From the NCBI RefSeq assembly GCF_000143415.4, contig NW_003314324.1, positions 943,379 through 1,007,378 on the forward strand: DNA of 64,000 bases, written 5' to 3'. Positions 28,200 through 46,402 of this stretch are shown here, piece after piece. This DNA comes from Selaginella moellendorffii. Lineage: Eukaryota; Plantae; Lycopodiophyta. The notes below the pieces were generated by a model that did no database searches, had not been told where the DNA came from, and saw nothing but the letters and a program-made list of their open reading frames with translations. Numbering within the stretch: the stretch's first letter is position 1; every line of letters starts with the position of its first letter. The position numbers were made by a program, and so were the translations under genes.

Positions 28200-29270
28200 A
28201 TGCTGGTGGCGGCGGATTTCTGGCGCGCTTCCGGTAAGATCGAGTGCTCGTCGATGCGCATCACTGCGCTGCATTTCCCCGGGATTGCTGGATTCGCAAG
28301 CTTGCGCGGCATCGATCGCCGCAGGAGGCCAAGATTTTGCAGCAGGAGGCAAAGATTTTGTAGCGGAGCTGCGTCGATCGGGTGCATTCCAGGGCCAGGA
28401 TTGAAAATCTGCGCGCTCGAGCAGGGCACGGAGGAATGGCTGGAAATTCGCAAGGATCGTCTCACGGCCAGCACATTTGCGAATGCGCTGGGGTTCTTCA
28501 AAGGCAAGAGGATCGAGCTGTGGGAAGAGAAGGTCGGGCTTAGAGGCGCTTTCAAAGGAAACCAGGCGACCAGATGGGGTGTGGAGAACGAATCCGCCGC
28601 GGTGGAGAGCTACAAGAGGATCACTGGCCATCTCGTGGATCACATTGGTTTTAAAATCTACAAGGAGGACGAAGAACAGCAAACACTCCGGGAAGAGAAA
28701 GGTGGTCGCGAGCAAGCTGAGAAGTTTAGCTGGCTCGGTGCTTCGCCGGATGGTCTCATCGAAGGCAACGAGTCCGACTTGTTCGAGAAGAAAGGAATTC
28801 TCGAGGTGAAGTGTCCACACATGAGAGGGAGGAGAAACGCTGGAGTTCCATGGACCAAAGTTCCTCACTACTACGTCCCCCAGCTCCAGGGGCTGCTGGA
28901 GATAATCGGGAGGGAATGGATGGATTTCTACGTATGGACCGGCAAAAGCAGTGCTTGCTTCCGGGTGACCAAGGATCCGGAGTACTGGACACTGATACAC
29001 GGGTTGCTCAGCGAGTTTTGGTGGGAGAATGTGATCCCGGCACGCAAGGCACAAGCAGCCGGAGAAACAAACTTGGATGCTTTCAAGCCTGGTGCTGAGC
29101 ACCCAAAAACGGGGGCGATGATCAAAAAGAGCAAAGAGCTGGGTATGTCGTATCCTTTGATATGGCATGACGTTGGTGGCACTGTGCAGCCCGTGCAGGC
29201 TGGACTTAACTTGACACTCTCCATCCTCTCGACCACCAAAGTGGAAAAAACTGCCAAGGAGGAAGCTTGA
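28200..29270 (+). CDS. YqaJ-like viral recombinase / lambda-exonuclease-family PD-(D/E)XK nuclease
   Basis: QGTEEWLEIRKDRLTAS, ATRWGVENE, LGASPDG, LEVKCP and YYVPQLQG; intronless; Arg-rich N-terminal extension. Confidence 0.88.
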   Translation: MLVAADFWRASGKIECSSMRITALHFPGIAGFASLRGIDRRRRPRFCSRRQRFCSGAASIGCIPGPGLKICALEQGTEEWLEIRKDRLTASTFANALGFFKGKRIELWEEKVGLRGAFKGNQATRWGVENESAAVESYKRITGHLVDHIGFKIYKEDEEQQTLREEKGGREQAEKFSWLGASPDGLIEGNESDLFEKKGILEVKCPHMRGRRNAGVPWTKVPHYYVPQLQGLLEIIGREWMDFYVWTGKSSACFRVTKDPEYWTLIHGLLSEFWWENVIPARKAQAAGETNLDAFKPGAEHPKTGAMIKKSKELGMSYPLIWHDVGGTVQPVQAGLNLTLSILSTTKVEKTAKEEA

Positions 29271-34805: not shown

Positions 34806-36217
34806 TCACTTCGTCTGGAAGATGTTTTGGATCATCTTCTGGGGAGAATTCGCTGCTGCTGCTTCGATCTGGGCGATTTCGTCGCTGGAGAGCCGCCAGC
34901 CAAGCGCGCCCAGGTTCTCTCGTGCTTGATCCAGGGTCTTGACTCCGGGGATTGGGATCGTTCCCTTGCAAATGCACCAGTTGATTGCTACCTTTTGGAC
35001 GAACGCAAAAGGCAGAAGAAAGATCTCAGCAGTGGAATCGAATTTGATTACCTGTGACATTGTCTTCTTCCTTTTTCTCGCGATCTCTTCCAGGGCGTCC
35101 AGCAGCGGTGTAATTCCCGGCAAAACTCGAGAGAAGAGCAATCCCCTACGCGTACGTGTTAACGTAATGGTGGATCAAAAGAGAATTTTTCTGATACCGC
35201 GGTCCCTGTGGAAGGCTGGTTGACGACGCTTGGTATTTTCCCGTGAGCATTCCAAGTCCTAAAGGACTGTAAGCAATGACTTTGATTCCCAAGTCATCGC
35301 ACACGGATTTAACCTCCATTTGATCGGTCCCCATGCTTAGAAGAGAGAATTGGACCTGAAAATCAAACAAGAAGTTACAAAGAAGAAAGGACTATCTAGA
35401 CCTGGGCAGAGCTTAGAGGAACTCCTTGCTTTTCCAAATACTTGTGGATTTTTACCAGTTGCTTCGGTCCATAGTTACTTACACCCACGGCCTTCACAAG
35501 TCCCTGGCAGTAATTTTATCATGTTTTGCTCTTACCGTCGTAGCAAACTAACTTGGAGCATACCTCCTTGTAAATTTCCGCAAGGCCGGACCACAGTGCT
35601 TGTTCTTGGAATGGAGCATAATTTGCAGCTGACCAATGCAGCTGACCAATTCCAAGCTGTTCCATTTGTAATCTTCGCAAAGATCCTCTGAAAACCAAAG
35701 AAAACAGACTTCCAAAATCACGTAAGAAGGAGAAAACTTACTTGCAAGCTTGAACCATTTGCCATGGTGTAACTCGCCATGGATAAGCCGCAAACTTGGT
35801 GGCAATCACAATATCTTTTTGAGTGCCTGGGAAAAACAGAGTTTCATTGAGAGAAGCGCAAATGTGGATTAAGATCTTAAACCTTGTTGGAACTCTCGGA
35901 TAAATTTGCCCAGAAGAATCTCGCTTCGCCCATTCAGTTTTCCTGTGCCATACGAATCCGCTGTGTCAAAGAAATTAACACCTTTGGAAGTTGCAAAGTT
36001 GAAGAGCTGCTGAAGCTCGTTGTCCATGGAGGGATTGTATCCCCACAGCAGTGTGTTACCCCATGCCCAAGTTCCCAATCCCATTGGAGAGACCTTTACA
36101 GGGCCAAGCTTCACCTTTGCCATAGAGAATCTCAGAATGGATTGATTTCTGGAATAATCTTCCAGTTACCTTGTCCCATGGCCAAAGTGCTGGCATGAAC
36201 GGTAGTAGTGAAGACAT
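34806..36217 (-). CDS. PLR1: Pyridoxal reductase (aldo-keto reductase), multi-exon
   Basis: [65 protein letters not shown] and C-terminal MIQNIFQTK. Confidence 0.87.
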
Positions 36218-36362
36218 AGATTCTCGAGGGAAGAAGCTGTGAAATAAAAAAGACTTTAAAAGCTGCTTGGATAATTTAAAGGTTCTGTGAAACAAAGGTT
36301 ATATATCCAAATCTTGTTGTGCAGAATGAGATTTATTTTCTCAAAATTGTGTGTGCAAAGCC

Positions 36363-37247
36363 TTAATGAGACTTTGAAAAAGAATAATTAGTTCGTATTG
36401 TACAAAATTTGGTGTGCCAACACCTGAATAAAGAAGCCATAAGATGGATTTTATTCAGGAAAAAAACACTGGCATCCTTCACCCGTTCAACGCCCCTCAC
36501 TCTCGCACCGTTGGTAAACTTCCGCTTGCAGACGGAACATCTCAGGCGCTGTTGGTCATGCTCCTTGTTGTTAAAGTAATCAAATCTAGTCTCCTGGCCG
36601 CAAAATATACACGGAACTAGCTTTTCAGTGCCTTGCTTAAACGCCATTGATCTCTTTCTCTTCAGGCTTTTCTCCAAACCGGGCTTGCCCAGCCCAAGCG
36701 GCACCCTACAGTCACTCAAAATCTGAGCTTCACGAGGCCTTGGATTAAAAAATCTTGAGCTTTCAAGTGGCACAAAATCATGTAAAACTGCACTGGAAGA
36801 TGAAGATATGTGCATAAAATCATGTAAAACTGGCTGTGAAGTTGAAGATGTTATGTTCTTCCTGTGCATGCTTGAAACCTCCAAATCAGGCAGTGCCCTT
36901 AGTTGGCTGTTCATGTTTGATATAAGAGCAAAACGATCCTCTTCATCCATTGTAGTAGCACCACCACCACTAGAACTTCCTTCTGTTTCATCTGATGACA
37001 ATAACGACGACTCCGGCGAGCCCCCAGATCCAGCAATGGCCTCCGGTTTAGCATCAAATCCCCCAGCTTCATCTATACCTAGCGCTTCATCGCGAGTTAC
37101 GTTTCCTGTGATTATAGTTTTCACAATTATTGAATCCGTCTCCCTCCCCCTCAAAGATGTAATATGTTTGTGACAACTTTCGAGCGATGGGTGCCAGGTT
37201 TCCGTGAGAAGAATCACACCTCTGGCACCCCGATCATCTGGCCGCAT
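36363..37247 (-). CDS. Atypical Dof-like C2C2 zinc-finger protein A (ends uncertain)
   Basis: 294-aa ORF with CIFCGQETRFDYFNNKEHDQQRLRCSVCKRKFTNGARVR, preceded by a basic KRKR. Confidence 0.6.
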   Translation of the reverse strand: MRPDDRGARGVILLTETWHPSLESCHKHITSLRGRETDSIIVKTIITGNVTRDEALGIDEAGGFDAKPEAIAGSGGSPESSLLSSDETEGSSSGGGATTMDEEDRFALISNMNSQLRALPDLEVSSMHRKNITSSTSQPVLHDFMHISSSSSAVLHDFVPLESSRFFNPRPREAQILSDCRVPLGLGKPGLEKSLKRKRSMAFKQGTEKLVPCIFCGQETRFDYFNNKEHDQQRLRCSVCKRKFTNGARVRGVERVKDASVFFLNKIHLMASLFRCWHTKFCTIRTNYSFSKSH

Positions 37248-37556
37248 CTCATCACCTATATAAACTTTTTGGAAACTTTTTGAGTGTAACTAGAAACCTT
37301 GGATTCATAAGGTCCTAATTATAGTGAAAAAAAGAAAGGAAATATAAGGCCATAAAACCTTTAGGCCAAAACCCAAAACCCTGAATTTTGTGTGTGTTTG
37401 TTCTTGTTCGTGTTCTTCCGCTGCTTCGCCACTTTTTTTCGTCTTCCCCAAACCAGGTTTTGCTCTTGCAATCTCCATCACTCTAGTGAAACATAGCTGC
37501 TGCTCGATGCCCAGCCACCGGAACCAAAGCACCCCAACACAAAGGATCCCGCTTGT

Positions 37557-45790: not shown

Positions 45791-46348
45791 TCACGACTTT
45801 GGATCCATGGCGTGGAGCTTGGCCAGCCTCTTGCGCTCCTCCCCGCGCAGCTTGGCGCCGGGAGTGAACTTCCTCTTGCACCTCAAGCAGCGCCGCCGCG
45901 GTTGATCGTGCCGGTGGTTGTTAAAGTAGTCGAATCGCGTCGCGGATCCACAAAAGATGCATGCCACCGCTGCCGGATCATCCCTGCGCCTCAAATCGCT
46001 GGCCGGAGGAGGAGGAGGAGGAAGAGGAGGGCGAGACAAATCCTCCGCGCTCGCTGGAGAAGTCACTGCGCTGCTCGATCCCAGAGGCGCTCCGGCAAAC
46101 CCCAGCGTGAGCCATGGTTTCTTGCCGCCAAGGTCGGGAGCGCCAGTGTCTCGAGACGAGGACGACGATGACGACCTCTCGCAGCTCGCGCTCGCGCTCG
46201 CGCTCGTCGATGGGCTCCTGCAGAGCGCGAGGCCCAGATCGAGCTCCTCCCCCGGACGATCCTTGTGATCTTGGGCGATCAAAGTCGCGATTTGGAGCTC
46301 TAGCTTGCGGAGGAGAGTGGTGTCCTGGTGGCGGCGATGATCATCCAT
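45791..46348 (-). CDS. Atypical Dof-like C2C2 zinc-finger protein B with EAR-like motif
   Basis: ATG at 46348 and TATA CTATATAAA (minus) near 46410. Contains LDLGLAL and C-terminal CIFCGSATRFDYFNNHRHDQPRRRCLRCKRKFTPGAKLR. Confidence 0.72.
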   Translation of the reverse strand: MDDHRRHQDTTLLRKLELQIATLIAQDHKDRPGEELDLGLALCRSPSTSASASASCERSSSSSSSRDTGAPDLGGKKPWLTLGFAGAPLGSSSAVTSPASAEDLSRPPLPPPPPPASDLRRRDDPAAVACIFCGSATRFDYFNNHRHDQPRRRCLRCKRKFTPGAKLRGEERKRLAKLHAMDPKS

Positions 46349-46402
46349 GGAAGAGAAGAAGAGAGGAAAAGGAAGAGAAAAAAGCAATGCATTACTTTAG
46401 CT

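Follow-up and report, generated by a model that had tools for sequence, protein, structure and literature searches.

A 64,000-nucleotide stretch of the Selaginella moellendorffii genome (the window, to which all positions given below refer) harbors on its minus strand an open reading frame of 294 codons and a stop (36363..37247), here called gene A. The frame is intact on both haplotypes, is not called in the public annotation and codes for a zinc finger that by sequence profile and predicted fold belongs to the Dof superfamily. This finger is a shortened, strongly diverged Dof; it constitutes a spikemoss offshoot of a well-known family and no new kind of protein. We consider it likely that gene A is genuine, intact and transcribed at a weak level, and with similar confidence we take its putative product for a Dof-derived regulator that is specific to the lineage and recognises DNA in an altered or weakened manner. 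Dof factors have been treated as uniform, each with one N-terminal CX2CX21CX2C finger binding AAAG. In the lycophyte studied here, intact unannotated genes contain a Dof finger which is shortened, has lost its Trp and resides at the C-terminus.

The finger of gene A is a diverged Dof domain

A six-frame regular-expression scan placed the Cys box CX2CX20CX2C of gene A at 36528..36611 on the minus strand, inside the 294-codon ORF. The finger peptide described in the earlier note covers 36495-36611 (minus strand) of the translated ORF; the four-Cys finger with its 20-residue loop is real, and the departures from the Dof consensus which had been pointed out (CIFC, FDY, Phe for Trp, short loop, C-terminal place) are all present. 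The Pfam model Zn_ribbon_Dof (PF02701) matched gene A at 36489..36620 (minus strand; ORF residues 210-253, profile positions 3-47 of 59) with 39.1 bits (E 8.3e-10) and its paralogue in the window, gene B, with 41.9 bits, both above the gathering score of 26.6. The match is not a product of chance and supports the proposed relationship to Dof. The family can, however, not be termed unrecognised, as the earlier note had it, since PF02701 passes its threshold for both genes and the closest paralogue, XP_024543368.1, already bears the RefSeq name 'dof zinc finger protein DOF1.3-like'. The finger is recognised by existing public profile models, and the set of known DNA-binding domain kinds is unchanged.

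Four classical Dof features, namely spacing, Trp, complete domain and N-terminal position, are lacking in gene A. A, B and XP_024543368.1 all have a 20-residue loop instead of the Dof spacing CX2CX21CX2C; when 166 fingers were aligned, the gap fell after the first pair of Cys and ahead of the T-[KR]-F strand. Where Dofs have [RK]-[YH]-W-T-x-G-G, gene A reads K-F-T-N-G-A (Phe for Trp, GA for GG). Profile positions 48-59 of the Pfam Dof model, the L-R-N-V-P-V-G-G-x-x-R-K segment, are unmatched in gene A. While the Dof domain is described as an N-terminal stretch of 50-52 residues (review PMC9897228), the Cys box of A, B and XP_024543368.1 ends 54, 28 and 37 residues, respectively, before the C-terminus. 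The near-invariant QPR of Dofs is QQR in gene A only. Gene A has retained its four Cys as well as the residues of the Dof core. No Dof paper with X20 spacing was found within the full-text library searched, where the matches were surveys of GATA factors.

These properties become apparent by comparison with a canonical Dof, Arabidopsis CDF1 (8xuf). Both share the four-Cys ribbon and the core T-[KR]-F-x-Y-[FY]-N-N...Q-x-R-x-x-C-x-x-C-[KR]-x-x-T-x-G. The canonical domain possesses a 21-residue loop, CPRC, FCY, RYW, GG and QPR, whereas gene A shows 20 residues, CIFC, FDY, RKF, GA and QQR; furthermore, the canonical finger is N-terminal and matches nearly the full profile. The scores of the subgroup of gene A against the Pfam model are weak and amount to 39-45 bits as compared to 104-113 bits of canonical Dofs over positions 2-58. 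With these low scores and a clade of their own, which includes only one other Selaginella protein, A and B do not nest among ordinary Dofs and form the distinct subgroup that had been suspected.

The 195-aa form of gene A (see below) was modeled by AlphaFold2 using a 51-row alignment. The finger was predicted to comprise three strands (pLDDT 92-95) and to be followed by a helix at model residues 154-187 (36390..36491, minus strand), whose pLDDT sinks from 82 to 63 and which lies where Dof profile positions 48-59 would be. This predicted helix includes an L-x-K-[IL]-H-x-M tail common to gene A, gene B and XP_024543368.1. Apart from a short N-terminal helix, the remainder of the model is disordered. 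Foldseek returned as top PDB match of the finger model 8xuf_C with a probability of 1.00 and a TM of 0.72 by target (rmsd 2.1 A over 46 columns, 39% identity), at an E of 3.9e-3, just above the 0.001 line of the tool; the next matches were generic zinc ribbons. According to its PDB title, 8xuf is the CDF1 Dof domain in a palindromic-bound complex with a DNA duplex. A sequence profile of the two fingers matched 8xuf with E 5.7e-8. Structure prediction, which the earlier note had recommended, thus yielded a finger that overlays the CDF1 Dof domain, and gene A is predicted to share the fold of this solved structure.

Relatives of the finger are Dof-type proteins

The two-finger profile was run on 1.84 billion representative proteins and gave 153 matches at E up to 1e-3. 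As to the suggestion that an HMM of both fingers be used for searches, the best match of this profile was a further S. moellendorffii protein, XP_024543368.1 (92 bits), followed by Dof-type proteins. XP_024543368.1, which was the sole close relative of A and B in this search, consists of 172 aa and is encoded by a single exon on scaffold GL377619.1. It resembles gene A in its small size, the CIFCG start and X20 loop of the finger, the motif KFT-x-GA-x-LRG (KFT-P-GA-x-LRG in XP_024543368.1), the location of the finger near the C-terminus and a short L-A-x-L-H-x-M tail. Over the full length the two proteins are only 34% identical, and XP_024543368.1 is annotated, unlike A. Out of 46 finger residues, gene A shares 26 with XP_024543368.1, and gene B 31. 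A scan for EAR motifs (LxLxL/DLNxxP) disclosed LSLTL in XP_024543368.1 and LDLGLAL in gene B (46223..46243, minus strand) and none in gene A. Gene A is without LxLxL and is the fastest-evolving and most diverged member of the three. Within 10 kb on either side of the XP_024543368.1 locus there was no synteny with the window, the only similarity being of the generic PPR type.

The matches that followed XP_024543368.1 also have Phe for Trp, but their loop comprises 21 or more residues, and often two or three fingers (up to four) are present. Their sources are a moss (Ceratodon purpureus), a lycophyte (Diphasiastrum complanatum) and unnamed assemblies. Such multi-finger proteins (e.g., Ceratodon KAG0576476.1, Diphasiastrum KAJ7555101.1 and metagenome/Logan sequences) have in common with gene A the Phe and the core F-[KR]-Y-[FY]-N-N; they differ by a loop of 21-23 residues, the number of fingers (one to three, up to four), a finger position that is not C-terminal, and other protein bodies. 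Ordinary Dofs ranked after the Phe-type proteins, with 35-45 bits.

In a FastTree phylogeny of the 166 fingers, A, B and XP_024543368.1 formed a clade (support 0.82), to which SELMODRAFT_415191 (0.85) and then SELMODRAFT_29567 (0.82) were successive sisters; these supports are modest, the alignment having only about 49 columns. SELMODRAFT_415191 (D8RVB5, 203 aa) shares with gene A the C-terminal finger, a similar start (CVFC) and Phe for Trp, while the partial SELMODRAFT_29567 shares the RFDYYNN signature. Both have kept the 21-residue loop, and SELMODRAFT_29567 has in addition retained CPRC and Trp and reaches 91.6 bits in Pfam. Gene A, gene B and XP_024543368.1 therefore make up a small subfamily, which so far is confined to S. 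moellendorffii in protein collections that may lack the proteomes of other spikemosses. The simplest reading of these sequence relationships is that the subfamily arose from a Dof gene within the Selaginella lineage.

Reading frame and start codons of gene A

The 294-codon frame of gene A is opened by an ATG at 37247, near which there is a TATA-like sequence (37258-37266). An RNA contig stops at 37239, 8 nt short of this ATG. An alternative start is Met100 of the ORF (36948..36950, minus strand), which would give a product of 195 aa, close to the paralogues in size (185 and 172 aa). Several out-of-frame ATGs stand before the in-frame ATG at 36950, and the 99 codons upstream of Met100 contain no stop on either haplotype. 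Depending on the start codon, the protein of gene A thus has 195 or 294 aa. At the given base composition, the chance that 195-294 codons are free of stops was estimated at about 1e-5 to 4e-8.

The disordered body of the protein contains a 42-nt in-frame tandem duplication (36770..36849, minus strand) comprising two VLHDF-containing units. A 59-nt GT..AG interval located 3' of the finger (36422-36480) was considered as an intron. Splicing at this place was rejected as the main form of the gene, since the tail common to gene A, gene B and XP_024543368.1 is preserved when the interval is read through; the site lies outside the RNA contig coverage.

Gene A is tightly packed between its neighbors. 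On the downstream side, 240 nt (36124-36362) separate its stop from the aldo-keto reductase start codon; on the upstream side, contigs of the OB-fold 3' UTR come within approximately 30-60 nt of its first ATG (37248-37304).

Gene B and the absence of both genes from annotated protein sets

Gene B resides approximately 9 kb from gene A on the same strand and codes for a paralogue of 185 aa (45791..46348). Its ORF extends over 45791-46387, the likely coding part starting at 46348, and its X20 finger was located by the six-frame pattern scan at 45878-45961 (minus strand). In a BLASTP comparison the two proteins aligned over the finger and a short tail only (36/60 identical, E 2e-15), with an insertion in A's copy of the conserved tail. 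Of 46 finger residues, 32 are identical between A and B. No significant similarity was detected by BLASTP between the bodies.

Neither gene is called on either haplotype. In the assembly GCA_000143415.2, a single-exon CCCH protein of the window is present residue for residue on two scaffolds, namely GL377628.1, from which the window was taken (GL377628.1:943379-1007378), and GL377603.1. The gene table was checked for a 20.9-kb locus of GL377628.1 that is identical to window positions 29060-50004. On both haplotypes no gene is listed at the place of gene A, which is flanked by the aldo-keto reductase and OB-fold genes, nor at that of gene B, which is flanked by a 224-aa gene and an NSUN2-like gene. 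The exact A and B proteins are absent from a collection of 15 billion proteins, and among the proteins predicted from public assemblies none matches A or B. Word-index searches, for which the complete ORF of A and the finger region of B served as queries, gave no match either; they are uninformative, since the profile search finds a clear relative. The expectation of the earlier note that Dof surveys may miss this family proved right for A and B as regards the outcome, the chief cause being that neither is a called gene on either haplotype and that both are therefore missing from annotated protein sets. Dof family counts derived from annotated proteomes are thus too low for genes like A and B.

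At 28200-29270 (plus strand) the window also harbors a single-exon gene for a 356-aa protein with a domain of the YqaJ type (viral recombinase exonuclease). The second haplotype has over the same span a 317-aa model drawn as spliced, which suggests a disrupting change.

Constraint and transcription of gene A

The fingers of A and B are saturated at synonymous sites (pS 0.83), with a dN of 0.31. The duplication is therefore old, and an ORF of this length cannot have stayed open by chance. We also compared the alleles of both genes. The locus on the second haplotype was reached via the allele of a neighboring methyltransferase gene; DNA identity between the haplotypes is 97.0% around A and 97.7% around B. 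The second-haplotype ORFs are intact, with 293 (A) and 186 (B) codons, and every indel is in frame. Two synonymous and one non-synonymous differences were counted in the A finger (codons 210-258; pN/pS 0.14), two and eight in the body (codons 100-209; pN/pS 1.1), three and four in the 99 codons upstream of Met100 (pN/pS 0.45), and one and three in the tail (codons 259-294; pN/pS 0.79). The Cys box did not differ between the A alleles. For finger and tail of gene B, one synonymous and no non-synonymous difference was found. With such low numbers significance is not reached (Fisher p of 0.25 with A alone and of 0.09 with A and B combined); the allelic counts fit, without proving it, a constrained finger on a freely evolving disordered body of gene A. 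Gene B revealed 14 clustered substitutions between the haplotypes in a Ser/Ala-rich stretch (46201-46218) and an in-frame insertion of a Pro codon at 46023, which looks like slippage or micro-conversion in low-complexity coding DNA.

Contigs from four RNA runs were spliced at neighboring genes and are therefore RNA-derived. Over gene A, contigs covered 36786-36975 and 37062-37239 in one run and 36807-37008 in another, with the strand inferred from the ORF. Their depth was 4-14, as compared to 35-960 at two spliced neighbor genes. The contigs, which stem from two studies, reach only the N-terminal part of gene A (36786..37239); over the finger exon none was obtained in the four runs, though contigs can prove neither absence nor ends nor strand. 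The contig 36807-37008 carries the allele of the other haplotype. Since both alleles are seen in RNA contigs, both are transcribed, at a low level. The earlier note had raised the possibility that the ORF is unexpressed and evolves neutrally. Low-depth RNA over the 5' part and the ratio of changes within the finger speak against it, whereas the uncovered finger and the near-neutral body speak for it.

These data have also to be weighed against the assumption that gene A, being a redundant paralogue, has come under relaxed constraint and is heading to a pseudogene, while B and XP_024543368.1 alone are functional. Such a fate would agree with the greater divergence of its finger from XP_024543368.1, the lacking LxLxL, the change of QPR to QQR, the insertion in the conserved tail and the excess of non-synonymous changes in the body, as well as with the low RNA depth, the uncovered finger and the fact that A was never called as a gene. 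Yet the frame has remained open for 293-294 codons on both haplotypes despite a duplication old enough to have saturated synonymous sites, the four Cys and the Dof core are retained, the Cys box is the same in both alleles, and the allelic indel is in frame. We therefore regard decay of gene A as unlikely and favor a gene that is intact and weakly transcribed.

Proposed function of the subfamily

Most likely, a Selaginella Dof gene gave rise to A, B and XP_024543368.1 by four changes, in which one loop residue was lost, RYW-T-GG turned into [KR]KF-T-x-GA, the final quarter of the Dof domain disappeared and the finger came to lie at the C-terminus. The product of gene A would be a mostly disordered protein with a basic Dof-derived zinc ribbon near its C-terminus, followed by a helix, and probably acts as a nuclear DNA-binding regulator of altered or weakened specificity. 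We infer that the products of the subfamily bind zinc and DNA and are located in the nucleus, and that repression is among their activities. The domain of gene A is basic (pI about 10) and is preceded, just 5' of the finger, by a KRKR patch (36651..36662, minus strand), which is a candidate nuclear localisation signal or DNA-contacting arm; both properties fit a nuclear nucleic-acid-binding zinc ribbon. Judging from their LxLxL EAR-like motifs, gene B and XP_024543368.1 probably act as repressors. Two of the three subfamily members thus pair the finger with a repressor-type motif.

The Trp that is Phe in gene A is called important for DNA binding in the review cited above (PMC9897228), which makes a loss of AAAG binding by the gene A finger plausible. 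It is conceivable, and we propose it only tentatively, that the X20 Phe-type C-terminal finger has lost AAAG recognition and gained a new DNA specificity or a protein-binding role. If so, the subfamily would represent a Selaginella-specific family of regulators and would point, along with the multi-finger Phe-type proteins seen in mosses and lycophytes, to a layer of Dof-derived ribbons which non-seed plants possess and Dof surveys have left undescribed. A, B and XP_024543368.1 can serve as a natural experiment on the portions of the Dof domain that DNA recognition requires.

A finger without any DNA binding, which serves as a protein-interaction module or as a small decoy titrating partners of canonical Dofs, appears rather improbable to us. 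The same review describes Dof proteins as bifunctional, and the loss of the Trp and of the C-terminal quarter of the domain, as well as the small size and mostly disordered state of the proteins, would suit such a role. The domain is, however, still strongly basic with its KRKR/KRK patches, and its predicted fold overlays the DNA-bound CDF1 domain; both points speak against such a role.

Descent of the finger from a transposase-type ribbon (IS1 InsA or IS1595-like) of a domesticated or decayed mobile element, without any Dof ancestry, is most improbable: the likeness to IS1 InsA to which the earlier note had drawn attention is confined to the motif level in the second half of the finger, apart from a general CX2C...CX2C zinc-ribbon topology and a run of basic residues at the second pair of Cys, and neither the label 'transposase-like protein' that JGI has given to some multi-finger relatives of the moss type nor sub-threshold Zn_ribbon_IS1595 matches (17-18 bits) in two other Dof-type proteins outweigh the fact that the comparison with Dof and transposase-ribbon models, which the note had proposed, yielded Dof above its threshold and no transposase zinc-ribbon model on A or B at E up to 10. 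Furthermore, neither terminal inverted nor long direct repeats surround gene A, the only repeat being the 42-nt duplication in its body; no transposase ORF lies nearby, the setting between the aldo-keto reductase and OB-fold genes is the same on both haplotypes, and the nearest relatives are all of the Dof type.

Two to four Phe-type Dof-like fingers were seen in many moss, lycophyte and metagenome proteins, including also KAJ7560775.1 of Diphasiastrum complanatum, and a 646-aa protein with three Dof-like fingers is named 'transposase-like protein' by JGI. Multi-finger Dof-type proteins clash with the definition of the Dof family by one finger. An 86-aa protein encoded on a 31-kb ENA/Logan contig has a Cys box starting with CIFCGGETR like that of gene A but is devoid of the Dof core, and probably represents a zinc ribbon of unrelated origin.
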